From Tubulanus polymorphus (lineage: Eukaryota > Animalia > Nemertea): DNA of 64,000 nt. The DNA is taken from contig NC_134033.1 of the NCBI RefSeq assembly GCF_964204645.1, positions 15,074,655 through 15,138,654 on the forward strand, in the 5' to 3' direction. A program made the translations under genes and the position numbers. Below, in pieces: positions 10,201-48,301 of the stretch (the first letter of the stretch is position 1; each line of letters begins with the position of its first letter). The notes under the pieces were generated by a model. It made no database searches. It saw nothing but the letters and a program-made list of their open reading frames with translations, and was not told the origin of the DNA.

Positions 10201-13200
10201 TATCGATATATATACACTGGAAACCAGTCTTACTGGGAACCAGTCTCATATAACACTGGAGACCAGTCTCATGTACTATACTGGAAACCAGTCTCATATA
10301 CTACACTGGAAACCAGTCTCATATATTATACTGAGAACCAGTCTCATATATTATACTGGGAACCAGTCTCATATATTACACTGGAAACCAGTCTTATGTA
10401 CTATACTGGACACCAGTCTCATATATTATACTGGGAACCAGTCTCATATATTATGCTGGAAACCAGTCTTATGTATTATACTGGACACCAGTCTCATATA
10501 TTATACTGGGAACCAGTCTCATATATTATGCTGGAAACCAGTCTTAAGAATTGTCGCTTACCTTCTGGCTTATACTGAGCAATTATTTCCACAGCTTCTG
10601 GCGCCCCCTTCAGGGCAGCCGCTGCATCTTCATGTGTAGCCTGCTGCAAGTCGACTCCATTGACCTGTGTACAATCAAAATTAACATTATTGTATCAGCA
10701 TCTTTACAAATCCCTTTACGACATCATCAAATCATCAATGAAGTGAATGTAGTTTAGGTGTCCCTGATCATAACCGTGATCCTTTGTGATACTAGCGCCA
10801 CCAAGTGGATCTAAACTGCAGTCTCACCACGATGTTAAACTTACCTTCAATAGTTGATCGCCTCTGTGTAGTTCGCCGCTCAAATCAGCCGGACCGCCGG
10901 CTAAAATAAACGACACAAATATCCCTTCTCCATCTTCACCTCCGACTATATTGAATCCCAAACCAGTCGATGCTTTCTTCAAAATAATCTTCCTGGGCTC
11001 TCTGAAAAATATAATATCAAAATCCCATGCTTAAACTTAATCAGGTATGTTTGTTTCATCAAAACCTTGTACACACATGAAGTGATGATGTCACCTAAGA
11101 CGCCCTCAAAGTGATGAGGTCACGGAAGACACGAAAAAAGTGATGATGCTGAAGTCACCCAAAAAGTGATATCACCAAAGACACCCACAAAGTGATGATG
11201 TCACCAAAGACACCCACTAAGAGATGATATCACCAGATACCCACAAAGGGATGATGACACCAAAGACACCCACAGAGTGATATTGTCACTGAAGGCACCC
11301 GCAAAGTGATGATGTCAATAAAGGCACCTACAAAGTGATGATTACACCAAAGATACCCACAAAGTGATGATGTCACCAAAGACACGCACATAGAGTGGTG
11401 ACATCACTTATGTCCATGTACTCATTCTAAAAGGTCATTTTTAGCTTATGCATAAACCGTTGATATCATGATACGTGTTATACCCATAGATAAGTGACAT
11501 CACCAGTATACGCGTATATGAGCAGCAGATTTGTATGTCGGATTATTGGTATTGATCGCAATGCTGTTTTATCCCTGTACCAGAGAATAGAACACGATTT
11601 ATACCCGAGCAGCCTGTACATTCTGAGAACAGCACAGCTCAGCGCTATATACACACACACTATACTAGCAGCTATTCTTTTCATGTTGTTTACACAATCC
11701 ATAACTAACTCGAATAATTTTATAAAATCAAATCATGAAATCCTCAAACATATGAAGTCCTGATGAGATGAAAGTAAATAACCTCCAGTTTATTTCTATT
11801 TGTTCAAATATCCTGTATCATTTGTTGAGGTTTGACCTGGTCAGTAAGTGAGGGAGGAGAATGACCAAGACAGGGGGTCGATATTAACCATGTGGGGGCA
11901 AAGCGATGGGTTGTGGAGGAACCAGATATATATCTACTCTATCAGATAGTCAGGTAAATAAGATATACTACTTGATCAGGAGAGTGGTAGGGGTAGGTTT
12001 AGGAAGTATAGTCAGGTAGATAAACTACTTGATCAGGAGAGTGGCAGGGGTAGGTTTGGGAAGTATAGTCAGGTAGATATACAACTGGGCGTGGAGTGTG
12101 GCAGGGGTAGGTTTGGGAAGTAGGTTTTAGGTTTTACCTGGTCAATAAATCCGGATCCTGTCGCGGTCTATGATGATTAATCCTAGTTGTTGACGACGAC
12201 ATTATCAACAACAATCGAAGAACACGATATTGAAAAGAATCACTCAATTAACGAAACGACAGTTGCTGCACACAATCAGAGAATGGCGAATGTATTTACA
12301 ACAGATCACCGCAATCATCGTCGAAACACGCAGCGTCGCAACTTGTAAATATAACATAAAATCCCACATTAAGAACGAAAAATAGAGTCCGAAATGTTTC
12401 CTTGAGCTGATTGATTATGTTTGCTGTTATCACTTTATCCTAATCATGGTCATCTTCAAGAATATCAATGTCATAACAAAACTATAAGACACATGTACAT
12501 ATTCTCAGTTCTAGATTGTATGTACATATACCTAATCATTTCTTTCGTAACTTCGATACTCCTGAAGATGACTATCTAGGACTAAGTCAAAGCGTGAAAA
12601 ATAAATTATGAGACATATAAACATATTCTTGGCTTGTATATATACCTCATAATTATTTTGTAACATAAGTATTCCCGAAGGTGACTGTCTCGGAAAAAGT
12701 CGAAACGTTGAAAATAAGTTATGGATTGTATATATACCTCACAATCTTTTTTGCAAACCTTAATATTCCCGAAGATGATGAAAATAAATCTTTGAAAGGA
12801 AACCTGTTCAGGCCCTTTTATCTTTCCGAATGTGGGATTTAATAAGATCACCGAACATCGCGCTCACAGTTAGAGAGAGAGAGAGAGAGTTTTAATGAAG
12901 CCTGTCAAACTGTGATTACAAACAGATCGATAATCATTCCATTTCTTCGAATCCCCGATAAATCACTACGACGACGACAACGTCGACGCAACAATCGCGA
13001 TCGATTAATATCCGTAACCGTAGTAACGATTCCGCTGAAACAACGACAGCTACTGGAGATCTCCAGTGTTTTTTTTTCTCTATTGAAGTACGTGTTTAGA
13101 ACAAACCGATAAGGCTTTGGTTTTATTTATTTTAGAGGCCGCTGAAACCGGTTTACGTAGTACATAAACGAACGCAACGATTTAGATTTCCATCGATGGA

Positions 13201-25200: not shown

Positions 25201-28200
25201 ACCGTCGACAGTTCCATTCTAAGCCGCTAGATGGCAGCGATAACTGATCAAATTTGGAGAACGACCTTTGCTAACAGTCATTTCCAGGCATCAAAAACAA
25301 ATGAGCAGATTTTTCAACCACAGAAAGGGATAAGGGATCAGGGTCAGGAACAGGCTGTGGCGCGTGGAAATGGCCGTTAGAAAACATCGCTCTCCGGTGA
25401 ATTTTGACGAAGCGTATTATTGTCATCGGATTGAGCTCTGATGGAACGGACGACGGTTCAATGAAGCGTTCTACACAATTCTAGCTCCGTGCAGGTGGCA
25501 GCAGCAGCAGCAGCAGCAGCGAGCGGCGTCCACGAGGTTATATACGCGACTGAGGAGGAAACACCTTACCCTGTTGGAACTGATCATCCTCACCTCGTGC
25601 GAGGTATTCCTCCGACATGTACGTCGGTTTCGCGATGACCAAACGAACGCGTTCTTGCGTGGCTTTCAACGCGGCAACGGCGTCTTCATGAGTGACGTCT
25701 ATCAGAGAATTCTCATTCACCTGAAATTATTATCATATATCAACAATCTGGTACACATCGACCGCGGCAGCTTCCATTCGCTCTAATCAGTGAAAGTTCA
25801 TTTCCAAGGATCGTTTAATGTATATATCAATCCGCAGTCTCAACCCTGCATCTGCACCTGCACCCCTTCAGAAATTCATTACGTTTGTGTTAGACTATTA
25901 GAATGTACATGAAGTTGATTTTTAATAAAAATATCTCTGATGAAGTTCTGAACACATGTGAAGTGCGGTCATTTTTGAAAGCTTGGTGATAAAATGTCTA
26001 ATGTCTGGTGTTTGTAGTTCATTTTCAATTAGAAATGTCTTAGGTGAAGTACTGAACACATGTGAAGTGTGGACGATCAGTTTTTGAAAGTGCGCTGATA
26101 GAATGTCTGGTGTTAGTAGTTCATTTATAATTAAAAATGTCTCCTGAGTACATGTGAAATGTGGATGATCAGTAAATCGGAAGAATTTTGGACGTGTGAA
26201 TGGGTCGACGTGGAATCGATTCAGACTTTCAAACATCATTCTAACCTGCATGAGTCGATCCCCGACTGCGAGGCGGCCATCTTGCTCGGCGGCGCCACCT
26301 TCGATGACTTTAGTGACAAATATACCGTTGTCGCTGGGAATATGTTGATTTCCTACTCCTCCAGCGATACTGAATCCTAATCCTAAAACAGAAACAGCAA
26401 AATATTCTACAATTACAAAGCAATCAACTTCTCTATATTACCAACAGTTACCATTATCTCATTAATTACTAGTAACATACACCGCACTGTTCATCACTGA
26501 TTTATACACTGCACTGCGGTGTAGACGCAGTGAAAGGGTTAAGGGGAGACCAGCGAAGACGTGTCACCGGCCGCTTGAACAACTCGGACAGATTTCCCTG
26601 ATTTTTCCGAGTGATTACACAAAATTCCCCGAATGAATCAGAGAAATTTCTAGGTTTAAGATTTCACAATTCATTCATTTTTAATGAATCACATATTGAT
26701 AAAGAAACACATGTAGTCAATAACATTATCCAAATTCTCCGAATTTTCCAGGTTTTTGGTAAAATTTGTCATATTCCCTACATTTTTCAGATTTTTTCTA
26801 GATTTCCCTGAATTTTCCAGGTTTTCCAGATATATGGGCGCTCTGTTCGTGATATCTTTTTCGCAGGCTAACAGTTCTGATACCGCGGCTATTCCGAATA
26901 TTGAGAACGTTGCGAAAACATATTTCAAGCATCTGACGTATTCTTGAATTAGAAACCAATCGACTTTCAAGTGAGAATTCAAGACGAGATGCGGACAAAC
27001 CTTTGTTTCCTTTATAAAGTATGATTTCCTGTATTTCTTCAGCGGGAGTTCTCGGTCTTTTAATGCTCTACAAACAAACAACGCAATCAGTTTCATCGAC
27101 GTTTTAAACATCATCGATAATTCATTAACGCAACCTCAATAATCATATACCGTACGTCACTACAGTACATATCACAGTTTACAGTCGTAAGGCTATATGC
27201 AATATTTATATATTTCAATAGCACTTGAATTTTAACTCTGATCTACAGATAAAAGAGTAGGAAGAGAGGGGAGTGTGAGGATGGAGCAGAGCAGTTTATG
27301 GAGGGATATGGAGAACTGGGAAGAGAGTTTGGGATTATTCAGTTGTTCCAACACTGAAAGGGGTATATGGAGAGAAAAGGCGTACTCACCAATCTGACAG
27401 TAACTCCAAGAGGGGCGGAGCTGGGGAGGGGGTTGTTACTCATCAATTTGATAGTAGCTCCAGGAAGGGGACTGGGGGAGGGGGTGTTACCAATCTGACA
27501 GTAAGGGGAGGGGAGTTACTCACCAATCTGACAGTAGCTCCAGGAGGGAGAGGGGAGTTACTCACCAATCTGACAGTAGCTCCAGGAGGGAGAGGGGAGT
27601 TACTCACCAATCTGACAGTAGCCCCAGGAGGGAGAGGGGAGTTAATCACCAATCTGACAGTAGCTCCAGGAGGGGGAGGGGGTCTGGGGGAGTGCTACTG
27701 GCCAAAGTGACAGTAGCTCTAGGAGGGGACTGGCGGGGGTGGGGGGGGGGTGTTACCAATCTGACAGTAACTCCAGGAGGGGGACTGGGGGAGTGCTACT
27801 CACCAATCTGACAGTAACTTCAGGAGGGGGAGGGGGTCTGGGGGAGTGCTACTCACCAATCTTACAGTAACTCCAGGAGGGGGACTGGGGGAGTACTACT
27901 CACCAATCTGACAGTAGCTCCAGGAGGGGGACTAGAGGGGAGTGCTACTCACCAATCTGACAGTAGCTCCAGCACGTTTCAACGCATCCACTGATTCGGT
28001 ATGAGACACATTAATACAATTTACACCATTCACCGCTGTGATTATATCATTGATTCTACAAAATACGAATAAAAATGGCCTCTACCGTGAATCCCCTTAT
28101 GACATCATCAATGCAAATCCATCCCTAAACCGAAGTCATCATCAGTCATCATACAGTTTGAGGTTAAGCGGATTTGAAAAAAAGAAGATTTCCGATGAAC

Positions 28201-31200
28201 TTACTTCAGACGTCCGTCTGCGTCTGCAGCGCCCCCTGGTATGATTTTAGTGATATAAATACTCGGATCGTCGCCGACGTGCGGATTATCAGTTCCTCCA
28301 GCGATACTGAATCCTAATCCGGAACTTCCCTGAAATTCATCCAATAAATTAAATACAATGACGATCAACTTCGAATTAAAAAGACATTTCAGATCGCGCC
28401 ATGTTTGGGTAAAACGGCTCGCTTAGCGACTACTAGTCGCGCGCCAAAATTGCACCCCAGATCCAAAATGGCCGACTCAATGTGAATTAGTAATCGAGGG
28501 ACTTGAAGTGGATTGATTTAAATGGAAACAAAATTCAATTAAAACTAGGTACGTTTATCTATTAATCAAATAGATTATTCTCCCCCGACCCCCCCCCCCC
28601 CCGCGGGAGTCTACCGGTTTTATCTGATTGTAGAGTTCACGGCTTCGAATTCAATTAAAATCCGATGAATTCTCCGAAGACGCACGCGCGGGCCGACAAC
28701 CGATATTCATAATAAGCGCAACACAACGCATGATCGATTTATCCGCAAACAAGCACGCCAGTTAAACATTCATCACTATTTCACATGATCAGGCGTCATT
28801 AGCCCCGACCGTTCTGTCTGTATCGGGAGACAGACCCGACACGCTGGTTGGTGGTGGTGGTGGTGGCCGTATATTTTATGACTGTATCAACGACTACATG
28901 TTACATGGAATAACTAGGCGTTTTATGGACTCGACTCGGCGAATTCGTGCTTGACAATCCGACATTTTCAATATTCAACGCCCCCTGGTGAACAAATACA
29001 GATATCAATTACGTTGAAACTTAACGAAATCATAGAAAATGTCATAAGCTACAATTTTGCAATTCATCGTGGTTATCAAATACGCCTAGGTACCGATATA
29101 ATATGAAAACGCTTAGTTATTCCGCTATTCAACGCCCCCTGGTGACCGTATACAAAACCAATAACCACGAAACTCACCGCAATCATAGAACACGCAATGA
29201 CAACGATTTTGCAATTGATTGTCGTTATAAAATAGGTACTGGTATAAAAATGCTAAGTTATTCCGACATTCAACGCCCCCTGGTGAACATACGCCGAAAT
29301 TCGCCATAATCGTATATAGCGTGTCACGAGCAACAATTTCGAAATTGATTGCGGTTACAAACTATGCATATACTATTTCACGCGATGAGCCGTAATTAGC
29401 CCGATCATCGTTCTATCTGTATACACAGACACCGCACTAGTGCAAGTGTATTCCATGACTATCGACAATAACATGTTGCACAGAATAAAAACCTATATAG
29501 ATTTCCGCATAGTCAGTATCGAAAAGATACCACGTCCGCTCGTCGACGACTTAGGGGAATTCATGAATTCTTCCAATATTTCGCAATCATCTCTCGTATA
29601 TTTGTCATACTGAGAGGGTATATATTATATAGCTAATAATAACACACACTTTATACATGTTGTTGTGCGAACAGTGCCCCCCCCCCCCCCCCGTATATCG
29701 AAATAGGTCTTCACTTGGACCGTAACCATTGCTGCTTGGCAACCCCGGAATACAACCGCTGTTTAGACTCGATTCTATGCTACGATCTATCTCTAAAACT
29801 AAGAGAATGACAAAAATGGCCCATAGAATCGAGTTAGAATGTCCACGGGCCCTAAGCGACCCGGGCCACCTATCATTTGCCGAAATGACATTTTCTCAAC
29901 CTGGCTTCAGAAAGAACTAAGGCTAAACAAAAAGGATACCTTGTTTCTCCGCAGCGGCCGGGTCATTTTTGTAAAATATGATAAAATTTATGAACAGTTC
30001 ATTTCTATAGCGGCCGGGTCTGTTATGGTAAAATTGATCACGATTTAAAAAAAAGTAATGTATAGGGTAGATAGGCGGCCGGCCGGGTCAACATTTAAGC
30101 TCAGCAGAGCGGAGAAACAAGGTATCAATTTTTTTTTAGCCTAACACACACGCGACCAATTATTGCCAGCCATTATGCCCTAGAGTCATACTAGATGCTC
30201 AGAAAATGATCTTTTTTTTCAAATTTTTCAGGGGGCCCTCAAAACCCCCTTAAGGACTTTGCGTCTACAGCGCTCGTGTTCATGTACCAATCACACGTAG
30301 GTCTCAGATTTTTTGGGCCCCCCCCCTATAAATTCCTGGATGCGCCGTTGATGTCAGTACAAGGCTCATAGAAATTACCAGTACCAAATTTCACTAATAG
30401 AAGCTAATGACGCGATGAACTAAAATATATTTCAAATAATCAATCTAATCGATGACAGTACACAATTTTATCAACTCCACCCTATTTCCATGGATACAAA
30501 CCGATTGATGGACATCGATTTGAAATTTTACACGTGTCGACTTTTTTTCTCTCTCTTTCGAATAAACGGCGTTAGTACAAAACCCTAATTCATATAGAAA
30601 TCGCTAGGTCACCGAAAACTGTGAAGCAACACGCGAATTATGCCGACACACACACACACGCGTAACCATGGTAACAATTTTTAACTATTGACACAAAAGA
30701 TGATCGCCGTGCGAAAGAAATTGATGATCGAGGTTCGAGGGGCACGTACGGGCGGCGGGGGTCGAAACTATCGACAGAATAAGGGGTAGGGGGAAAAACT
30801 GTAAGATCTGAGAGGCCTTTTAATGTAAAATCCCACCTAGTATAAAAAAGACGAGTACGAAATATTTCTTAGATCCTGTCACTATCCTTCCTTTGTAACA
30901 TCTATATTTTGGAATCATTTTAGTTTAGTCAAAACTTCAGAATAAACTGTTAAATCATCAACTGTGGGTTTCGCTCAACAATTACGTAATATTTCCTCGA
31001 GTTTATATTTATTCAACGTTCTGACTTTATCATAATACATGCGGTTATCTTCACTAGTGTTATGTCAGCACTATGATATATATTCTAACAATCCAGAATA
31101 ACTCGAAGTCAGTTGCTCTGAAGTTGGTTTGAGTGAACTGGCCGGACAATAATACCGTGGTTGCCATGATAATTCCAATAATTCCAATCCTCACCGCGGT

Positions 31201-36904: not shown

Positions 36905-36973
36905 CCTCATAACGTAGCGCGCCGACTGCGGCAAGTGGTGGTACGAATAAGACGAGTAGGAATCGCGATGGTT
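36905..36973 (-). CDS. dlg1: candidate 69-nt cassette exon (NHRDSYSSYSYHHLPQSARYVMR)
   Basis: Long polypyrimidine tract ending tttctag; AGG|gtacgc donor; symmetric phase 0, open. Confidence 0.65.
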
Positions 36974-37726: not shown

Positions 37727-37801
37727 AGATCCGACCGAGGCGCCGCTACTGATTGAATCGCGATCTATAGAACGATCTAACGACGTCTTAAACAATTTCA
37801 T
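37727..37801 (-). CDS. dlg1: candidate alternative first exon (MKLFKTSLDRSIDRDSISSGASVGS)
   Basis: ATG plus 25 open codons ending at a consensus gtaagt donor in phase 0. Confidence 0.65.
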
Positions 37802-38415
37802 AACCGAGTTCAACGACGAACGACTATCGACGGAACCGCGAGACGAAGACTGTCAAACAAAAAACACGCATCAGACGTCAGTTCCTTAAAACAGGGTTAG
37901 AGTTAACAGCAGTCGTATTCAGAAAAGTTTTCTAACTTAGTTGCTTTCTTTTTAAAAAAAATACATCTTAAGTTTATTTGCCGTAAAAGCTGAGCGGCCG
38001 GTTATAGATAGTTCCATAACTTGGTGCAGCCCTCATCCTATTCGACAACATAAATTGTCAATGCCAAAAGTGATTATATTTGCACGACACATAATTGTCC
38101 ACGAAAATAATTCGGGACAACTTCGTAAGGATTTCTTAAGAATTTCTGTGATAAATAAGCACTTTCTAAGGGCCATACTTAGTTTTTCCTAAAGTAACAA
38201 TTTTAAGCTCTTAGGAGACTAGCTATGAACCCCCGGTTACAATTGAAAAAAAAAAGAAACAAAAAAAAATATGAAAAACGAAGAAATGAAATTGCAGAAC
38301 CATCGTTTGAGAGAGAGATTGATGATGATTTGAGGTGGATTTATGTCGCCGGTTATTGAAGGATTAATCATTGAAGGATTCAGCAGGGCGTGCAAAGGGG
38401 AGGGGGGATACTCAC

Positions 38416-38445
38416 AGCTAGGCTTCCTACTGATCCTCGATTAGC
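38416..38445 (-). CDS. dlg1: 30-nt N-terminal micro-exon (ANRGSVGSLA)
   Basis: ttttgttttatccgacag / gtgagt, symmetric phase 0, open. Confidence 0.75.
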
Positions 38446-40529
38446 CTGTCGGATAAAACAAAATAATTAATATACAACTTGACGACTACTATAACCAGCA
38501 CGTGCTGCCATCTACCGACTGATATTAACACTAGGCCGGTATTAATCGCAGCAGGCGGCACGTTAACCAACACTGTGTTGTGCGGATAATGAATAGAAAA
38601 TAGAGTTTCCTAGAACTGAAGTCTGTTCATTTTTGTCTGGGATTTTTATATTATGGGGCAATTATACAGCATAAAATGGATATAAAAACGATGGTTTATT
38701 CAGACTGCGCTTTTTCACTGGTCGCCTATTGAGACCAATTTGAGGTATATGTTCAAAAAGATCAAGTGAAATATCCAAAAAAATTTAATCCCAGACAAAA
38801 CTTCACAAACTGTATAATCAGATAACAGTACCAGATTACTTCTCAGATTACATTCAAAATTTATCCATTATTTCTCATATTCTAGGAATGATGAATGGTA
38901 ATTGAGTTTAACAAAAGCTTAAGATCATCAAGAAACTTGATTGAGTCTTAACCCCTCGGGTTAACATTAATACCAGTCTATGAAACCAGCGCCTAGGGTT
39001 AACTAAATACCTCGATTGTGACAATGAATTCCTGTACCGTGGGAAGCAAGGATCCATTCGATGGCACTAGTGTACAAGCATTCGGAATACTATCCCAGAT
39101 TTCTGCTCGGGTTCAATTATTAAAATCTATCAATCATTTCTCAAATTCTACGAATGACGAATGATAAAATGTGCACCAAATTTGAACCTAAAAGCATCGA
39201 TCTGACTTTTATCTTCGGGAAAAGATTTGCCTAATTTCTGATGTGGGAGGCTAAAAATCTACATGAAATTACATTGGGGCTATTACAGTTAATTCGATGT
39301 TTCTTCAAGCATACTACCAGCTCAAGGAAACACTTCAGACTGCAGTTTTCATTCTTAGTGCGAGGTTTTTTTATACTATACCAGCACGTGCTGCCATCTA
39401 CTGACGGCTATCAACACTAGTCAGGTATACTCATTGCAGCCATTGCCCCGTTATCGGATAATCATAGTTATTAAGTTAATTACTCGCGGGCGCCACCTGA
39501 GAGCAGCCGACGAAAAAACAATTCCGCCTAAAATTGACGATCATCGACGCCGAATAACTTTACACTATTCGCACCCGTTTAAACGGTAACCATGGCAACG
39601 CGATCGGTAGTATTATCGTTATTAAACGCGTGTGCGCGCGTGGAGACGGTTTCGGTCGGTTTTTTTTTTACTCGTTCTCCTCGCTAGGAATCCTCACCGG
39701 GCGTCGGACGAGACGGCGTAAGAGATTACCGAGCCGATTCGATTGGTCGAGAATCGACGGTAATTGACAGGCGATCGTCGTCGTCGGGGGCGATACGAGG
39801 ATAAATCGCGTAATTCGGAACGTACGTACGGTCGTCGTGAATTCCTGACGGTAGAAATCCACCGCCTCGAGAAATCAATACGCAGAGAAAAATGCTGCGA
39901 GCAGATTTAGAGCTTGTTTTATGAGAGTGAGTCTCGGCCCCCCGAGTCGAGGGAGGTCTGTTCGCCGTGTGCCCCAACGCCGGTAGCATTTTCATTTCCT
40001 AGAGCTAATATGCAGAGAATCGTGCGCGGTAATAACGAAAAAATAATTCAAAGTCCGAAAATGTTTCCAAATGTTTTGTAATTCATGACTGAGCTATTTG
40101 AATCAAGAAGTTTATTAGTCGACATACGTCAAAATCTACTGCCTCGAGAAATCAATACGCAGAGAAAAATGCTGCGAGCAGATTTAGAGCTATTTGAATC
40201 AAGAAGTTTATTAGTCGATATAGTCAAAACGTTGAATAAACTACAAGCTCAAGGAAAGTTTTTCGGACTTTCTATTATTTTTTTTCTGTTATTACTGATG
40301 GATTCTCCAAATACTATAGATGTATTTAGGATTATGAGCTTGAAATCATCCTAACGCAGTTCAAATCACGCGTTTATTATCATCTCTTATCAATGAGGAT
40401 TTGGGAATTTCGAAGTTTATCATCTTATTTTGAATCTAATACTATATCATAGGTTTCCTGTATATTCTTATGAAAAGCTGTCCTAAGCAATAGGTCTGAT
40501 TGTTATCACAGAATGATCGTGAATGGAGC

Positions 40530-40750
40530 ATATGACAACTGGTCACTACACCCGACTGGTCACTTCACAACTGACCAGTCGCCACAGCTGACTGGTCAGC
40601 AGACCAGTCACCAGACAAACCAAACTTCAAAACTGTATCAATCACTACAGCTCAATGGTCTAGTGGTTAGGACAGAGGACTGGCAAGCAGAGGGCCCAGG
40701 TTCAAATACTGGTGGGGGTAGGGTTATGCGTGAGCTTAAGTGGTGGGACC
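40530..40750 (+). mobile_element. dispersed repeat with an internal tRNA-like segment; second copy at about 57175-57400
   Basis: A box tggtctagtgg and B box ggttcaaat in gctcaatggtctagtggttaggacagaggactggcaagcagagggcccaggttcaaat, identical at 40650 and 57267. Confidence 0.65.
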
Positions 40751-41215
40751 GTAATAGGAGATTATTTTGGAAAAACAAAATTTTTATTTTGCCTTTTAAG
40801 AAATTTACATCAGGCAGTTTTTTTTGTTGTTGCTTTTATCGTTGTTGTTGGATGTTGTTCATTAATTACGCGCGGCAACCAGAAACAATCACTGGCAAGT
40901 GAGGGATGTCAATGCGGATTATTAGAGTTATTCTTCATATCGTGTATTATTGAATTACCGATTGTGATTGTTATTCCATGTGTGAAACTCCGTCATAGGG
41001 AAAAGCGATCGTGCGTGTGTGAACTCCGACACAGGGAAACTGCTAATACACTCACACATACATACCGGAGCTCCGGTATATGGCAGGCCTCCGGTGTGGG
41101 ACAGGCAAACGCGCAGCTGTAGCGCCTTGGACCTTATGAATTCATACAACTTATGTTTATCATCCCTGAGCGCCATTTGGGCCATCATTCGGATTTTCCA
41201 AGAGAGATACTTAGT

Positions 41216-41605
41216 GATAGTAATTTAATTTCTATAGCGCCCTTTTCTGGTATTATTACCCCCAGCCTATAACTCTATTCCATGTATCAGTCATTTCTCC
41301 CTGAGAAGTAACATCCGAGCAGCTGCTAGGCGCTCAGGAGTCATCTATCAGGCCAGGTACCCATTTACTCCTGGGGCCTGTTGCACAGTCGTGACTTAAG
41401 TCCAAAACTGGTCTTAAGTTGTTAGATTGGCTATAGAACTTAGTTGGTCTTAGACTGGTCTTAAGTCTAAGTCATGACTATGCAACCGGCCCCTTGGTGG
41501 ATAGAGGCAATGAAGATTAGTGTCTTGCCCGAGGACACTACGGTAATGTACGGGGTTCGAACCTACGACCTCGCTTCCCAGAGTCGATCGCTCTAACCAC
41601 TCAGA
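41216..41605 (-). mobile_element. tRNA-derived SINE (with nested MITE 41374-41492); uninterrupted copy at about 56270-56576
   Basis: Minus-strand head gagtggttagagcg...ggttcgaacc (A/B boxes), then gtgtcctcgggcaagacac...ccacccaggagtaaatgggtacctgg central domain shared by both copies. Confidence 0.8.
41374..41492. mobile_element. Harbinger-like MITE (gggcc TIR); copies at 58115-58252 and degraded at about 21670-21900, 52540-52670, 57008-57130
   Basis: gggcctgttgcacagtcgtgacttaag ... taagtcatgactatgcaaccggccc; absent from the 56.4 kb SINE copy, which gives the empty site. Confidence 0.85.
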
Positions 41606-42691
41606 CTTGAGATAAACGATTCATTTTCGAAAATTCCGGTCGCTGTAATGAAGAAACCCGGTCGCTGCGAGTCCATTCAAGGACGGATCATTCTAATTAA
41701 GCAATGGCAGTTTTTATGAAGCTGTGAGTTGATTAGCCTCAGTTAGCGGCTGTGTCACCCGTCGTCAGTGAGGACCTCCCTGTTTGTGTGAAGACTTCTA
41801 ATCGAATCATCCTATATAGCGGACATGTAATTTCCTGTCTTACAGCCGGAGGGCTGGAGGGGGCGGGTTAGGGGGGGATTGATGACCTGTGATATTTAAC
41901 AACTTCTATATAACACTTGAAACTGAAGTCTCCGTTGATGGTGATTGACCTCGTCGATTCACGTATTCTTCAAGAAAATATCCGAACTATAAACACGTTA
42001 TGGATCAATCATTCGTCATCGCATAACTATCTCTTTAGATAGAATTTATGATAAAGACCTAAATTTCTACAAACGTTGCGTAAAATAATGTCTCAACGAG
42101 CATTTCACTTTTACAAATTAATCCAATTCAATTTCTAGAATCAATTTCAAGATAGAATCAACCAAATATTGAACAGGTTCTTAATCTATGTAGAAAAAAT
42201 AGTTTTATCTTTCGAACGATCTAGATTTTAAAATCATTTTCCAAATAATCTAATTCTTTTTTTATAGATACCGCCATCTCTGTACATATAACAAAATCCG
42301 TAAAATCCAACAATCGGGTTCTTTATTTCTTTTTTCATGAATAGTTTCTGTTTCAGTTTAGTTTTCTAAAATCGTTTTTCAAATAATTCATTTTTTTTTC
42401 ATAATAGATATTATCTTATCGAAACTATGAAATCCTTTGAAAGGTTCCGCGATTCTTGGCGGCAATAACAAAGAAAGAGATTGGCAAATAAAGAAAGTCG
42501 ATATATTGCGCGAATGATGCTGTTATCACAATTGAGCGAACTGTTTATTCGTTACACGCCTGAATTTCTGCAGGAAATGACTTTTCGAGTGTCGACGTTT
42601 TGTAACGGGTTTTTTTTTTCATTTTTTTCATAATAACTCGATATCGTATATGTATATAAATATATATATATATATATATTTATGTATATAA

Positions 42692-42724
<33 letters not shown>

Positions 42725-42733
42725 CACACATAC

Positions 42734-42769
42734 GCCCCCGGGGACTGGTTTTGTTCCTCTCGTAACCAT
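42734..42769 (-). CDS. dlg1: weak candidate alternative first exon (MVTRGTKPVPGG)
   Basis: ATG plus 12 codons, GGC|gtatgt phase 0 donor, CpG-rich upstream. Confidence 0.35.
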
Positions 42770-43553
42770 AGGAACTTACTTCCAATTTCAGCAACAATTA
42801 CTCGCGCCGCGTGCGACTACATTGTGTGTGTGTTTGTGTTTGTTTGCGTATTGATCTCCTCTCAGCAGACGCAATCCTGTCGCATTGTCATCGTCGACGA
42901 CGATAACCGACAAAAAAAAAAAACATTCGAATCTAAATCGAAAAATGTTTTATTTTTCGAAACGAACAGGTGTCGGATCGAAGGAATTTTCACGTATTTT
43001 TCCGCGTCCTCAAAACAGCTCACGACATTTCTTCATGACAAATAACCAGGAGGGGGGATGTGTATCATCCGTAGATTGTTAGGGGGTAAAATAATCACTG
43101 GGAGATTTGTCAGATATTACCTTGGTTTCTCATTGATAGTTGTCATCCTGGTTCGGGATTTATCCCTCAGGGCAGGTCTATGATATTGCGCCTTGGTTGA
43201 GCATTTATCCCTTAGGGGTAACTTTTTTTGATACATGGTCTATGAAACCAAGCCCCGATTGAGAGTTTTCCCCCAGGGGTAACTTTGATACACGGTCTAT
43301 GAAATTGCGCCCAGGATTTTTGACATAACTGTTTATTGGGTCCGTACAGTTTCCCGAAATACAAAGCTTAATTTGTTATTTGGTATATTCACACGTTGTT
43401 AAGATAAAAAGTTTTTCTTATAAAACTGCACACAGAGTTCAGTGTCATGAAAAGGTTTACCCGAAACTGATGCAATTTCTTCATGAAAAGTACATTTTCT
43501 AAATGAAAATAATGCTTTAATTGATTTTTGATTCAATTTCGTGCGATCAGCTG

Positions 43554-43661
43554 GATCCAGTTCCACAGTTCCCAGCTAAGATTTGACTCTGAGTTAACTC
43601 ATTGAAAATGAACTAACTTTGACTCAGAGTTAACTCTAACATACAACTGTGGAACTGGGTC
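43554..43661. mobile_element. hairpin MITE with CTG TSD; degenerate copy at about 31930-31995
   Basis: ctg|gatccagttccacagtt ... aactgtggaactgggtc|ctg. Confidence 0.8.
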
Positions 43662-44749
43662 CTGTATTTTACGAGTTGACGACAGTTTACTGCCTGTAAT
43701 TCGGTTGAACGCTATTTCCATGAATAAATTGATATTTTCGTCATTAATCGCCGATGTTTTCAATTGATGTTTCGCACGTCAATTTTAGCCCGGACTAATG
43801 GACGTTTAACAGCGATCCAAACCGATCGCTTCGGAGGGACCTCGACGACGTATCCATCCGACAGAGGGCGCCGCCGTCGTTACGCGAGATCCTAGTGTGC
43901 ATCGCGTTGCCACGGTTACGTACCTCCGGGGTAAAACGAGACTCGGTTGTCGTCGTCGTCGTCGATGACGTAACCGATATAAAATATTATTAGAGATGAT
44001 AAAAATTATTCATCGAACAAAATGAAAACGTTGTTTTAGCGTCGCGGTGAAATTTGACCCGCGTACGCGATATTGATTTTATATTATGTCGGGTAGTGAC
44101 GGAGAATATAGAGCTATTCTGAGGAGGTTTCATACAGATACATCATACCATACGTCTATCAGTTTACAATCTAACCAATTAATAACCAGGGCGGCCACCT
44201 TCCGACTATTTACGAATTCTCGGATTTATCCTTGTAATAAAATTAAGATCCCGGGGCACGGGTGAATGAAGAAATTTCTTGGTCTAATATCCGAGTATCC
44301 AAGCTCTCTGCAATTACAGTTTGTGAAATTCCCAAAGTTTTCCAGGGGATATCTTAGTCCCCCGCCCCCTGATTCCCTGAGTTTTCAAAGACTTTTCCTC
44401 ATAATAAAACAGAATTCCCTAAGTGAATCTGCTGCAGGCTAATGACGAAATATCTTCTAATTCTCTTAGGTTTCCAGGTCAGTGTCCACCCTGATTAACT
44501 GTAGATTATATAGTTTGTTCTAAAACACTCCCTAAAAAGCTCTCCAGTTATAGTATAAAATACCTTGAAATTGGTGTCCGGAATGTCTTTTCACCGGCAT
44601 TTCCACTCACGGCATTTTCACTTACGGCATTTTTACCTTCAGAAAATGACGCATCTAGCACAAGTAAGGGGATGCTATTTCCGATAATTGGGACATGGCG
44701 GTTTGAAATAAGGAATATCTACGTCTCTCGTCGGGTAGTGAATACTTAC

Positions 44750-44902
44750 GTGGTCGTATCTGATCGTGTGCACGTATTTGTGAAAAGATACGGCTTTATT
44801 GCCGGCGGGGGCGCCACTGCTGCTCGCGCTACTGCCCGAGCCCCGGCTCTTCTGGCTGTGAGGTACGGTCGGGGGTAGTTTAAAACGGCACCAAGCGAAC
44901 AT
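44750..44902 (-). CDS. dlg1: candidate alternative first exon (MFAWCRFKLPPTVPHSQKSRGSGSSASSSGAPAGNKAVSFHKYVHTIRYDH)
   Basis: ATG with in-frame TGA two codons upstream, 51 GC-rich open codons, CAC|gtaagt donor in phase 0. Confidence 0.75.
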
Positions 44903-47900
44903 TATTCAAATATCAAGCGCTTCCATATTATCACACTAGGCGGCGGTTTTTACCACTTCGGATGTTAGTTTCTTTTTATCTCACTAGATGGCAGTTTTAA
45001 CCATACGAGTTATGGTTATTTCACGTGCTTCACAATGATAAATCCCAGATTCTAGACGTTTTTATCCTTTTTTTCAATTTAACCACGCGAGTTATGGTTA
45101 TATCACATGCTTCGAGATCATAAATTCCGAATTCGACACGTTTTTCTCCGTTTTTTCAAGTATCTGATCATTTTTTCGATATCTATTGATCGAATCTCGA
45201 ATAATTGCGATGAATTTGCGCGATAATCTCAAAATTGCGCGAATCTACTCGAAAGCTTTTTCGAATTGCGTATCTAATCATCGAGAACGCATCATCAGCG
45301 CGAGTACGTCCGTAATTCCCCGCTGACAACAATGCATGCAACGACTGATCGTCATGGCGATTTTCGTCCGTGGGACAATAGTTTCGATCGAGCTGCGTAC
45401 GGTCGGTCTTTTTCCAACTGTTGCCGATGATAACGGATATACGAACGCGTCGGATAAGAGCAGTCGTCTCGAAGATCGTCCGGCGATCATAACTCACGCC
45501 GACGACGAGCGCGCGCGATCGACTTCAATCCCTCGTTCTACAAAATAAAACAAACAAATTGATTTTTATATCGGACGACGATAAAAACGAGGGAGAAAGA
45601 AAAGATTTTGACGAGATGATATTTCGAAAATTTGATGGAATGTAACGTAATGCGTGATGGCCGATGATGAATGGAGTTTAGATTGACGGGAGTCTGACGA
45701 CGAACGACTGACGCGTCGTTTCATAATGTAATTCATGCGAATAAATGGAACTGGCTGAAAAAGTGTGTATCAAATGAATTCTTTAAATCTGATTACGGGT
45801 GCGCCGTCTCCGGTGCAGTTTATATCGAAGTGTAGCGAGAATGGCGGTAATAGCGGGGTTAAACAAGGGGAGTACTGTTGTCTCCATTTGTTTGTACGGT
45901 GTTCTCCACATGCTGGAATTTTAGAGCGACTGCATTCATTGTTAAGTGTATGACATTGTGGCTGTTGAAGTAGCAAAGCTTTCGATCATACCGAAAAACT
46001 ACAGAAAATTGAAGCATCTTCTATTTTTCACAGTCAATCTTAATCTATATATTTCAAATCAATCGGCGGATGTCACTGTCATTGAGTACAACCAGTTGCT
46101 TAAAAGTGGAAATGACCAACTGGCTGCAACTGGATATAAATCGTCTCTTACCAGTTGTAAGCGTACACAAGCGAACTGATTGTATCCAGCCAGTTCCACT
46201 CATACGCTGAAAACTGCCTCGCGAATAGTTGTCTCCAGTTACTTCGTTGATGAACGCTAAGCTTTAGAGCTTATACCAGGGTCAAACAAGGGGGAATACT
46301 GTCTCCACTGGCATTTATATAGTTACGACGCAAAGAGTTCATTCTCTGGTTCCTAGAGATAACAACGCGGGGTCAAGCAAGGTAGAGAACTGTCTCCACT
46401 AGCGTTGACGAATCTATTGACATTTTTACGAGAGGAAAAAAGAAACGAATTGCAGAATTTTCAGTTTATAAGAGAAATGAGTCGGTTCAGTGCAAGGACT
46501 GAAGAACGAAGAAGGGTTGAGGTCGGTTTAATTAACACGAATATCGAACGGAATCATCATCAATCATAACAACTCATTGTTTATTCATAGATTCGATACT
46601 ATCATCCCCCCCCCCCCCCAATCCTCCCACCTCCCCTCTCTCTCTGCGTCTCAAGATGATTTACCTCTGATTATTTATATGAAACTGAACTAACCACCCG
46701 TAATACATAGCTATAAATCATTCCATCAACGAACATCGCACGCAAGATTTCCAGTGCAACCATCCAGATTGAGTAACTTTCGCTAATTTTTCATTTTTTC
46801 ATAGCAAAATTCGTCGAGAAAAGACTCATTGTACACATAGGGATCAGCTATAACTTAAACATCAGGGAGTATAATCTGAATGTTTGTCAGTTGAGATAAC
46901 CAGAGACCCAGCGCTTCAACAATGAGACAAATTTATAATACACCTTTTAACATCGACGAAACAGTCGTATTTGTTAATCTTTTCAACTCTTTTTATGTTG
47001 TGTATTAGCACTAGTCTGTATGAAATCCCATTACTAAATCAGTTCTAAGTTACTAATCTTGGAATTTTGCTTCAACGCTTATATTTCTGAAGGCGATTAT
47101 TGGATTTAATGGAAAAGTTGAATAAACTACTACCTAAATACTTCATACTCTTCATTATTCTAAGTTGGGAAAATATCTTATTTCATAATACGCTAATTTC
47201 ATATTCACACGATAACAAGACCATGTTGAATTATTTTTTTCAAGTGTTTAGTTCGGTTCGTGTTAACATTTTACGCCCTGTCACGTCGGCTTGTCTGACA
47301 AACGACTGTTAACCGCGTCTGCTTATCAAACGACCGTTAACCGTTACACAGCAGTTTAATCATCATTTGAATAAAATGTCTCCACATCGTGCGTAAATGA
47401 TGAATCCCTCGCCGAAACCTGGAAATATTTGCACCTAGAGTTTACGAGCAAGCAGCAATTGAAATGATAGACGAGAGAGGAGAGAGAGGAGAAAGGAGAG
47501 GAGGGGATGGAGGAGAGGTTAGAAAAGAGAGTGTGGAGGAGAGGATGGAGAGGAGAAAGAGAGAGAAAGGAGAGGAGGGGATGGAGGAGAGGGTAGAGAG
47601 AGGAGAGAGTGTGGAGGAGAGGGTAGAGAGGAGAAAGAGAGAGAAAGCAGGGGTAGGGATGGAGGAGAGGATGGAGAAGAGAGGAGAGAGTGAGGAGAGG
47701 ATGGAGAGGAGAAAGAGGATAGAGAAAGGAGAGGAGGGGATGGAGGAGAGGGTAGAGAGAGGAGAGAGTGTGGAGGAGAGGATGGAGAGGAGAAAGAGGA
47801 GAAAGGAGAGGAGGGGATGGAGGAGAGGGTAGAGAGAGGAGAGAGTGTGGAGGAGAGGAGAGGTGTAAGAAGAGAGAGGGGAGAAAAAGGGAGAAGAGAG

Positions 47901-48113
47901 AAAAAGCAGAAAAGGAGAAAGAGAGAGAGAAGAGATTTACTGGTTTTTGGGATTAGTTTAAACACTGTTGCCTTCATACAAGCGGAATTCCGCACGTATC
48001 TCATCGACTTTAACCTTCATCCCGCCGAACACAACGACGAAGACACACAATATCGAAGCGTCTTACTAAACAAACATTCGTTCGAAATCAAAGTAAACTT
48101 CACTCCCACTTAC

Positions 48114-48158
48114 GGCGAATAACTTCCGATAAATAACTCGCTCGCGATAATTCCCCAT
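48114..48158 (-). CDS. dlg1: candidate alternative first exon (MGNYRERVIYRKLFA)
   Basis: ATG plus 15 codons ending at GCC|gtaagt in phase 0. Confidence 0.5.
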
Positions 48159-48301
48159 CGAACGATGGATCTCTCGATTAAAAACCTTGAACGACTTGAC
48201 GGACACAACGCGAGCTTTCATTAGAAAAACGTATTTTTATCCTTCGCCGATTCAGCTTACAGAAATATCGGGCCACGAGTTATTCAATATCCTTCGAGTC
48301 T

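Follow-up and report, generated by a model that had tools for sequence, protein, structure and literature searches.

The window analysed here, a stretch of 64,000 nt from the ribbon worm Tubulanus polymorphus, carries a Dlg/MAGUK gene on its minus strand, and all the frames discussed below sit inside this gene. The gene has the features of the DLG subfamily: L27 at the N-terminus, then three PDZ domains and, after these, a guanylate-kinase-like domain. Pfam matches to PDZ, all on one strand and in the expected succession, were found at positions 28204-28368, 25541-25720 (a weak match representing the C-terminal half of the domain) and 10827-10982, followed by a Guanylate_kin match at 2309-2692 (E 2.3e-29). 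The L27_1 match (E 1.4e-20; L003:1345-1476, minus strand) lies about 11.4 kb past the window end. In extended coordinates, i.e., with the numbering continued past the window end, the L27 start, the L27 exons and the proline-rich exon map to 77911, 75350, 66451-66324 (the second half of the L27 domain) and 64571-64365. The L27 exons, located 2-14 kb past the window end, are closely similar to those in insect Dlg proteins. A 25.9-kb intron extends between 64365 and 38445. The exons 38445-38416, 37849-37727, 36973-36905 and 32591-32538, which follow this intron, have lengths divisible by three (30, 123, 69 and 54 nt) and all of them are in phase 0, in agreement with the preliminary description, which had named this phase as the one needed by the downstream exons. 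The last of these matches the ...EYEEI.LERG lead-in to PDZ1 of the Dlg proteins P0125 and P0154. The micro-exon at 38416-38445 is the likely acceptor exon for transcripts starting at L27 as well as for those starting at the exon designated candidate 2 (Table 1).

Table 1. Features of the Dlg locus in the intron and small-exon region (window coordinates).
Feature	Coordinates	Strand	Basis or remarks
Candidate 1, 15-codon ATG frame, GTAAGT donor	48114..48158	-	unsupported; single copy
Sequence upstream of candidate 2 exon, contiguous in one run contig	44903..45537	-	X2 record 7; single copy
In-frame TGA, two codons upstream of candidate 2 ATG	44906..44908	-	read in sequence
Candidate 2 alternative first exon, coding part, 51 aa	44750..44902	-	ATG 44902, phase-0 donor, conserved peptide
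GTAAGT donor of candidate 2, phase 0	44744..44749	-	sequence; contig break
Candidate 3, 12-codon ATG frame, gtatgt donor	42734..42769	-	rejected
Micro-exon ANRGSVGSLA, 30 nt, phase 0	38416..38445	-	acceptor ...ccgacag, donor gtgagt
Internal phase-0 exon, 41 aa, 123 nt, includes candidate 4 (ATG 37801)	37727..37849	-	acceptor 37851-37850; single copy
Small exon, 23 aa, phase 0, between variable head and PDZ1	36905..36973	-	acceptor tttctag, donor gtacgc; sequence only
First constant-body exon, 54 nt, PDZ1 start, 18 aa	32538..32591	-	resembles ...EYEEI.LERG PDZ1 lead-in

Four ATG-initiated frames of this region had been proposed to be an expanded array of interchangeable first exons. The four frames were present on the minus strand exactly as described, each ending at a phase-0 GT donor, and three of the donors (candidates 1, 2 and 4) have the consensus gtaagt. 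To set a baseline, frames on the minus strand of the 37.7-48.3 kb interval were compared with those on the plus strand and in random sequences. Open frames that start with ATG, span 10 codons or more and end at any phase-0 GT numbered 72 on the minus strand versus 101 on the plus-strand control. Those ending at GT[AG] numbered 35 versus 33 ± 7 in random sequence, and therefore frames like candidate 3 occur at chance level. Frames ending at GTAAGT, on the other hand, numbered three versus an expected 0.33, a count that none of 200 random sequences reached. Since two of these three frames belong to real exons (candidates 2 and 4), a single one, candidate 1, is left against the expected 0.33.

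Candidate 4 (37801-37727, gtaagt) was rejected as a first exon. A T-rich tract and a cag acceptor are found at 37851-37850, and a TGA directly precedes the acceptor. Ahead of the ATG the frame stays open for 16 codons, which include a Ser-rich RGSV(D/G)S-type motif common to the micro-exon 38416-38445 and the tail of exon 37727-37849. From these sequence features, candidate 4 most plausibly lies inside an internal cassette exon, 37849-37727. Candidate 3 was also rejected. It belongs to a set of 35-72 equivalent chance frames, its donor forms the edge of a TG/TA microsatellite, and the depth of the assembled run contigs X2-X4 is zero over 42725-43042. Just upstream of the candidate 3 ATG, after 42780, there is a GTAAGT. 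The frame of candidate 1 has an earlier ATG at 48221, which extends it to 36 codons, and it is flanked by a 460-bp GA-rich tandem repeat and an (AT)33 microsatellite; with one GTAAGT frame for 0.33 expected per interval, its sequence appears no better than chance. A locus with four or more alternative first exons, all driven by promoters of their own and encoding different Dlg heads, would account for the presence of all four frames with phase-0 donors and for the excess of GTAAGT-ended frames on the sense strand. It would also have a precedent in DLG2, for which six or more alternative heads generated by alternative promoters have been described in mouse (PMC6389146). Nonetheless, that excess is made up of one real first exon, one real internal exon and a frame lying unsupported between simple repeats, and taking this together with the origin of candidates 3 and 4 we consider such an array highly improbable. 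Two coding starts are supported, that of L27 and that of candidate 2, rather than four or five, which matches the situation in Drosophila dlg. The locus thus appears to follow a design familiar from other Dlg genes, in which L27 and non-L27 forms come from alternative promoters, and the notion of an expanded array is not supported.

The anatomy of the candidate 2 exon was observed directly. It is a single-copy sequence in the genome, located in the large intron downstream of the L27 exons, and has its own ATG. The TGA at 44908-44906 implies that it cannot be entered from upstream as an in-frame internal coding exon. The encoded peptide consists of a Met-Phe-Ala-Trp-Cys-Arg-Phe-Lys head, a Ser/Gly-rich insert and a AVSFHKYVHTIRYDH tail. 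Searching for the peptide in related species, as had been suggested, showed that it is conserved in gastropods. A profile (A2) built with foreign sequences only (land snails, dog whelk and other assemblies), leaving out the ribbon-worm copy, identified the candidate 2 exon in the 124-kb locus with an E value of 4.9e-6, the next-best match being 0.49. The exon was also the top match in the whole 268-Mb genome, with an E value of only 0.158, and the N-terminal half of the profile match was weak (3 bits). In a BLASTP comparison with the snail partial model P0119, the peptide aligned from Met1 to Asp50 (E 7e-5). The Bradybaena model P0154 opens with a peptide of the candidate 2 type, conserved there as a predicted N-terminus, and runs directly into PDZ1 without L27.

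The motif was also found in twelve further exon-sized ORFs, each of which reads through the donor at the same place; at the position of the candidate 2 donor the foreign ORFs continue as 'VS' or into GTATGG. The conserved part starts at the Met, and the regions upstream are unrelated between species. In the contig of one relative, in-frame stops lie 7 codons upstream of the Met, and the exon terminates at a GT in phase 0. Members of the family share an M-F/L-S/A-W-W/C-x-F/Y-R/K start and a (R)SVSF(K/H)KYVxxIxYD box, and the invariant positions in the alignment (A1) are M1, W4, F7, H15, R20, VSF, KYV, I47 and Y49. Within the family the ribbon-worm copy has diverged furthest, with a 16-residue Ser/Gly insert and His where others have Lys. 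It has a single Cys, at position 5, a column occupied by Trp or Leu in 13 of 13 foreign sequences, and thus lacks the palmitoylated Cys pair of alpha-type heads. These sequence comparisons place the head in an old peptide family common to the ribbon worm and gastropod molluscs. The claim of an interchangeable non-L27 start is thereby upheld for candidate 2, on account of the upstream stop, the conserved peptide, the donor and the contig break described below, and fails for candidates 3 and 4. That candidate 2 is a real, evolutionarily conserved alternative start of a protein without L27 is well supported.

The run contigs provide sequence and depth; strand, transcription start and level are not readable from them. 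Record 7 of X2 (848 nt) follows the genome from 45537 to 44749, and its last 59 letters depart from the genome at the candidate 2 donor. This break coincides with the predicted donor within one shared base, the surplus matched base being the same letter as the first G of exon 38445, the presumed acceptor partner. A point against is that the X3 and X4 contigs that cross the donor (44602-44817) are unspliced only. Upstream, coverage by X3 and X4 contigs rises to 3-4 times the flank depth over 44905-45566 and 45604-45799. As start signals, the resulting changes in depth, near 45.8 kb and at 44905, can be read in more than one way, and the segment 44903-45537 may represent a long leader or overlapping promoter-region transcription. 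X3 and X4 also show an unexplained hole, with no contig over 44818-44904.

We consider it likely that this minus-strand Dlg gene has two coding starts, one at L27 and one at candidate 2, candidate 4 being internal and candidates 1 and 3 products of chance. An upstream promoter, past the window end, would generate a transcript encoding MPVRKQ, the L27 domain and the proline-rich exon. A second, internal promoter in the 25.9-kb intron would produce the first exon ending at 44750, and translation from the ATG at 44902 would yield the 51-residue head. This exon would then be spliced in phase 0 to the small exons (probably 38445-38416, 37849-37727, 36973-36905 and others), which would be followed by PDZ1-3, a putative SH3 and the guanylate-kinase domain. 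The product would be a Dlg isoform without L27 and the proline-rich segment, a possible functional counterpart of fly DlgA or the vertebrate alpha type, in which the head may act as a regulated membrane-binding or partner-binding module in place of L27-mediated multimerisation.

Three other readings of candidate 2 were weighed against this two-start explanation. The exon could have a dual use, as a first exon and, through an internal acceptor (...cacagccag), as a 3' part joined to L27 transcripts, in which case the KY...YD box would be common to both isoforms. A C-rich tract followed by cag does give a phase-0 entry at 44851, and an equivalent arrangement exists in vertebrates, where the KYRYQDED motif that follows the head is encoded in an exon common to the alpha and beta isoforms (bioRxiv 10.1101/2020.10.02.323568). 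Furthermore, in the snail models P0119 and P0155 the homologous exon follows L27 and the proline-rich exon, so it may also serve internally in some species. These models are computed predictions, however; such a junction was seen in no read or contig, and the conservation across species includes the Met-led head rather than the box alone. Dual use, with a box shared by both isoforms, thus seems unlikely. Less probable still is that the 45.5-44.75 kb transcript is non-coding or a decay target, with upstream ATGs stopping the ribosomes, the protein starting from a later Met such as that at 37801, and the 51-aa head not being made in this species. There are thirteen upstream ATGs between 45537 and 44903, which would hamper translation from the ATG at 44902 if the leader truly reaches 45.5-45.8 kb, and the divergence of the ribbon-worm copy (the insert and the Lys-to-His change) could be taken in the same sense. 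Yet ribbon worm and molluscs, despite the distance between them, have retained the reading frame, the Met, the box and the phase-0 donor, an argument for selection acting on the peptide. The true start may also adjoin the ATG at 44902, because the X3 and X4 contigs end at 44905 and contigs cannot show starts. Finally, X2-X4 could be DNA libraries and the break at 44749 a structural allele or chimera coinciding with the donor. The library type of the three runs is unrecorded, and the X2 depth is flat, about 4-9, over exon and intron alike. This reading is very unlikely, given that the contigs total 87-108 Mb for a 268-Mb genome and have shared holes, a misfit with whole-genome DNA at that depth, and that the X3 and X4 depths step 3-4-fold over single-copy sequence. 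In 4.7 kb, a break would fall by chance within one base of the named donor with a probability well below 1%, and the conservation evidence is independent of the runs.

Dlg scaffolds organise cell junctions and synapses, and the presence of L27 sets their multimerisation and localisation. The design of two coding starts, with and without L27, is already known in flies and vertebrates; what this analysis adds is a specific non-L27 head common to the ribbon worm and gastropods, for which no description was found in the searchable literature. The alpha heads of vertebrates have a palmitoylation signal made up of two Cys. As predicted for the ribbon worm, the vertebrate alpha/beta genes (PSD-95, PSD-93/DLG2, SAP97) have short alternative first coding exons in the intron after the L27 exons, which join common exons; their alpha head is followed by KYRYQDED, which the KY..Y.DE-like box of the ribbon worm resembles. 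They differ in that the ribbon-worm head has one Cys and its box lies within the first exon itself. Drosophila dlg1 produces DlgS97, with L27, and DlgA, without it, from multiple transcription starts (PMC3492131; PMC5004195). In both fly and ribbon worm one gene has an upstream start for the L27 form and a downstream start for a form beginning shortly before PDZ1. The ribbon-worm head, however, belongs to a family found so far in gastropods and the ribbon worm. The gastropod Dlg models from Bradybaena similaris (BsWGS_09652, P0154) and Candidula unifasciata (CAG5136209.1, P0119) share the head family and differ in the exon, which in snails stays open for about 15-20 codons before the conserved Met and has a longer 3' end, whereas that of the ribbon worm has the stop two codons upstream and the 16-residue insert. 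A four-fold array of first exons would have been far more unusual, and that idea has been corrected. A shared non-L27 head, kept since the common ancestor of ribbon worm and gastropods, would extend the two-promoter design to Spiralia, and the short conserved motif is a testable candidate for membrane, calmodulin or kinase binding.

The box, HKYVHTIRYDH in the ribbon worm and KKYVDxIxYDxE in its relatives, resembles the vertebrate KYRYQDED. A profile search of solved structures (PDB) with the head family gave no DLG match, and the homology with the vertebrate motif is therefore only a resemblance. It is doubtful, but conceivable, that in Spiralia the aromatic-basic head together with the SVSFKKYV..I.YD box is homologous to the alpha head and KYRYQDED of vertebrates, the design and the box being ancestral to bilaterians. 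If that were the case, vertebrates would later have swapped the Trp/Phe membrane anchors for palmitoylated Cys, and the Trp-to-Cys change at position 5 of the ribbon-worm head could be an independent step to a lipid anchor.

The Pfam scan placed PDZ domains at three places and a Guanylate_kin domain on exons of the window, and the remaining 5′ part of the Dlg gene was located in the 60 kb past the window end that were added to the analysis. Searches were run exon by exon. The proline-rich exon that comes after the L27 exons includes seven consecutive prolines and other Pro-rich segments and is reminiscent of the proline-rich insertions of SAP97-type Dlg proteins. A comparable segment, ...EEDLPPPPPE..., is found at the equivalent position in two mollusc-like transcripts (P0125 and P0151). 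Since the L27 and proline-rich exons are past the window end and the next exon is the micro-exon at 38445, three of the four candidate first exons (candidates 1-3) lie within the intervening 25.9-kb intron. This is the position of the non-L27 first exons in fly and vertebrate Dlg genes (PMC3492131; PMC6389146).

Table. Exons, candidate frames and signals of the Dlg gene (ext., coordinate extended past the window end)
Feature	Position	Strand	Remarks
MPVRKQ start	77911 (ext.)	minus	read in the sequence past the window end
L27 exon 1	ends 75350 (ext.)	minus	Pfam L27_1, E 1.4e-20
L27 exon 2	66451-66324 (ext.)	minus	phase-0 end
Proline-rich exon, 69 aa	64571-64365 (ext.) = L002:365-571	minus	phase 0; just past the window end
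Candidate 1	48158-48114	minus	
In-frame TGA	44908-44906	minus	two codons upstream of the candidate 2 ATG
Candidate 2	44902-44750	minus	
Candidate 3	42769-42734	minus	
Micro-exon, 30 nt, ANRGSVGSLA	38445-38416	minus	phase 0, multiple of three
Internal phase-0 exon	37849-37727	minus	acceptor cag at 37851-37850
Candidate 4	37801-37727	minus	
Small exon	36973-36905	minus	phase 0, multiple of three
PDZ1 start exon	32591-32538	minus	phase 0, multiple of three

The preliminary description had interpreted the four ATG-initiated frames as an expanded array of interchangeable first exons. Re-reading of the sequence confirmed that the frames are present exactly as claimed, that all four end at phase-0 donors (three gtaagt and one gtatgt), and that the acceptor exons named for them have the phase and length described. 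The frequency of such frames was then compared on the minus strand of 37.7-48.3 kb with the plus strand and with first-order random sequence. ATG-open frames of at least 10 codons ending at some phase-0 GT numbered 72, versus 101 in the plus-strand control, and those ending at GT[AG] numbered 35, versus 33 ± 7 in random sequence. GTAAGT-ended frames were three, versus 0.33 expected, a number that none of 200 random sequences reached. Two of these three are real exons, leaving candidate 1 to be set against the 0.33 expected.

Because GT[AG]-ended frames occur at the random level, a frame like candidate 3 carries no information. The gtatgt of its donor forms the first unit of a TG/TA microsatellite, a GTAAGT is found just upstream of its ATG, and no contig from sequencing runs X2-X4 covers 42725-43042; candidate 3 was rejected as a first exon on the basis of its chance-level frame, microsatellite donor and lack of contig cover. 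Candidate 1 is a single-copy sequence with a GTAAGT donor and a 41-codon open frame (ATGs at 48221 and 48158), with a 460-bp GA-rich tandem repeat on one side and an (AT)33 run on the other. It has no similarity to the family of candidate 2 peptides in a profile comparison with the open frames of the 124-kb locus, and by its sequence it is not distinguishable from chance. The GA-rich array (47473-47935) has periods of 78 and 159 with about 85% matches. It accounts for long but artefactual Ser/Pro-rich and Glu/Arg-rich open frames, found on both strands, that adjoin candidate 1.

Upstream of the ATG at 37801, the frame of candidate 4 contains no stop for 16 codons, up to a T-rich tract and a cag acceptor that is immediately preceded by a TGA. 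The codons upstream of this ATG (SSSRGSVDSRSS...) encode a Ser-rich RGSV-type motif, as is also found in the micro-exon and at the exon's own end. The acceptor and the open Ser-rich frame argue against a first exon; the simplest reading is that candidate 4 is part of an internal phase-0 exon that would be joined to 38416. The search of the genome for paralogues of this exon found a single copy only.

Candidate 2 consists of one Met-led frame of 51 codons followed by a GTAAGT donor, and it is single copy in the genome. The in-frame TGA two codons upstream of the ATG blocks any in-frame entry into the exon from its 5′ side. Conservation is the strongest line of evidence that its 51-residue peptide, hereafter the head, is a probable Dlg N-terminus. 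A word search with the peptide alone, limited to proteins of 28-89 aa, gave no candidate, a blank that carries little weight. In the representative search, with the L27 exon as query, most matches were exon-sized fragments and not full-length Dlg proteins; among the longer ones, a partial Candidula unifasciata (land snail) model, P0119, led to the head family. From Met1 to Asp50, candidate 2 can be aligned with a stretch of P0119 (BLASTP E 7e-5). A search with this stretch recovered a second Candidula model and a Bradybaena similaris model (P0154) that opens with the head peptide and continues directly into PDZ1, without L27. A profile of four sequences then found 12 more exon-sized ORFs in NCBI (Nucella lapillus), ENA and Logan assemblies.

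All foreign sequences share the pattern M-F/L-S/A-W-W-x-F/Y-R, a basic run, and RSVSFKKYVD-x-I/V-x-Y-D/E. The similarity starts at the Met, the preceding residues being unrelated among species, and the foreign ORFs continue as "VS...", the translation of a GTAAGT or GTGAGT donor. In a relative's contig (L008/L009), the Met comes seven codons after in-frame stops, and a phase-0 boundary (...|GTATGG) closes the exon. A Met-led head exon and its phase-0 donor are both conserved, and the head would be common to Nemertea and Gastropoda if the genome is that of a ribbon worm.

As an unbiased test, a profile (A2) was built from 13 foreign sequences only. Its best match in six frames of the 268-Mb genome was the candidate 2 exon (E 0.158), and when all open frames of the locus (124 kb; 5,626 frames) were compared, candidate 2 had an E value of 4.9e-6, with the next match at 0.49. 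The peptide is conserved in relatives, as the snail models, the foreign ORFs and the genome-wide best match indicate. The second-best match in the locus, an open minus-strand frame at 41871-41969 that includes ...FSFKCYIEVVKY..., is not significant; it may be a chance match or a degenerate copy of the head box. The genome paralogue search with the head found a single copy only. The motif is absent from the papers of the searchable library, and a paper on the Aplysia synaptic transcriptome does not describe Dlg heads; the head is a conserved motif so far undescribed in searchable papers.

Contigs assembled from sequencing runs X2-X5, all from one study and with the kind of library unrecorded, were placed on 42725-47470, an interval that was chosen to avoid the 460-bp tandem repeat and that covers candidates 2 and 3. 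Four of five runs contain the stretch. An 848-nt contig (X2 record 7) matches 45537-44749 with 789 letters and leaves the stretch for its final 59, a break that coincides with the predicted candidate 2 donor. The one extra matched base, a G at 44749, is also the base with which exon 38445 begins, and a junction to 32591 (GT...) would give two matched bases, not the one seen; the probable splice partner is exon 38445. In X3 and X4, contigs at 44905-45566 and 45604-45799 have depths 3-4 times those of their neighbours, and unspliced contigs are also present at 44602-44817. The contig totals (87-108 Mb versus the 268-Mb genome), the holes common to the runs and the stepwise changes of depth over single-copy sequence suggest that the X2-X4 libraries fit RNA better than genomic DNA.

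The 87 bases at 44818-44904, the first 28 codons of candidate 2, have no contigs in X3 and X4, where the flanking contigs end at identical bases, and are crossed without differences by a single contig in X2. Allelic bubbles, a transcript end or a filter could account for this hole. An 82-bp unit occurs twice in tandem (44996-45159, copies 81% alike) 100-250 bp upstream of the ATG, within the stretch contiguous with the exon in the run contigs. If the leader reaches 45.5 kb or beyond, it includes 13 upstream ATGs. An exact look-up of the upstream ORF at 45281-45490 returned no record.

The Dlg gene has two alternative coding starts. The interpretation of the preliminary description is partly supported: the claim of interchangeable first exons holds for candidate 2 and not for the other three, and an expanded four-exon array is not supported, candidate 4 being best read as part of an internal exon, candidate 3 at chance level and candidate 1 not distinguishable from it. 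The locus is probably a two-promoter Dlg gene, a design already known. An internal promoter somewhere in about 44.9-45.9 kb would produce a transcript in which the candidate 2 exon is spliced to 38445, and translation would yield a Dlg protein without L27 and without the proline-rich segment. The candidate 2 exon may also have a dual use, being entered in L27 transcripts by way of a phase-0 acceptor inside it at 44851, a variant suggested by two snail models that place the homologous stretch behind L27.

Pfam assigned no family to candidates 2 and 4 or to exon 36973, and no DLG match came from searching the PDB with a profile of the head family. The Cys at position 5 of the head suggested a palmitoylated alpha (PSD-95-type) head. 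This Cys is not conserved: every relative has Trp or Leu at this position, and membership in the palmitoylated alpha family therefore fails. The candidate 2 box resembles, without statistical support, the vertebrate Dlg motif KYRYQDED, which comes after the alpha head (bioRxiv 10.1101/2020.10.02.323568). Given its aromatic-basic start and its basic-Ser-Phe-Lys-Lys-Tyr box, we propose that the head may be a membrane-binding or calmodulin/kinase-regulated module.

The window also includes, at 43551-43665, an element of about 115 bp whose genomic matches fall on both strands and which is therefore palindromic or hairpin-forming. A first look put the number of candidate copies above 2,000, and among the 84 matches listed there were copies 87-96% identical on many contigs. 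Its word depth in X2-X4 reaches 2,900-50,000. The match to a plant miRNA precursor model is weak and sub-threshold (23.6 bits versus a gathering score of 80), and the element looks like a MITE-type hairpin repeat.
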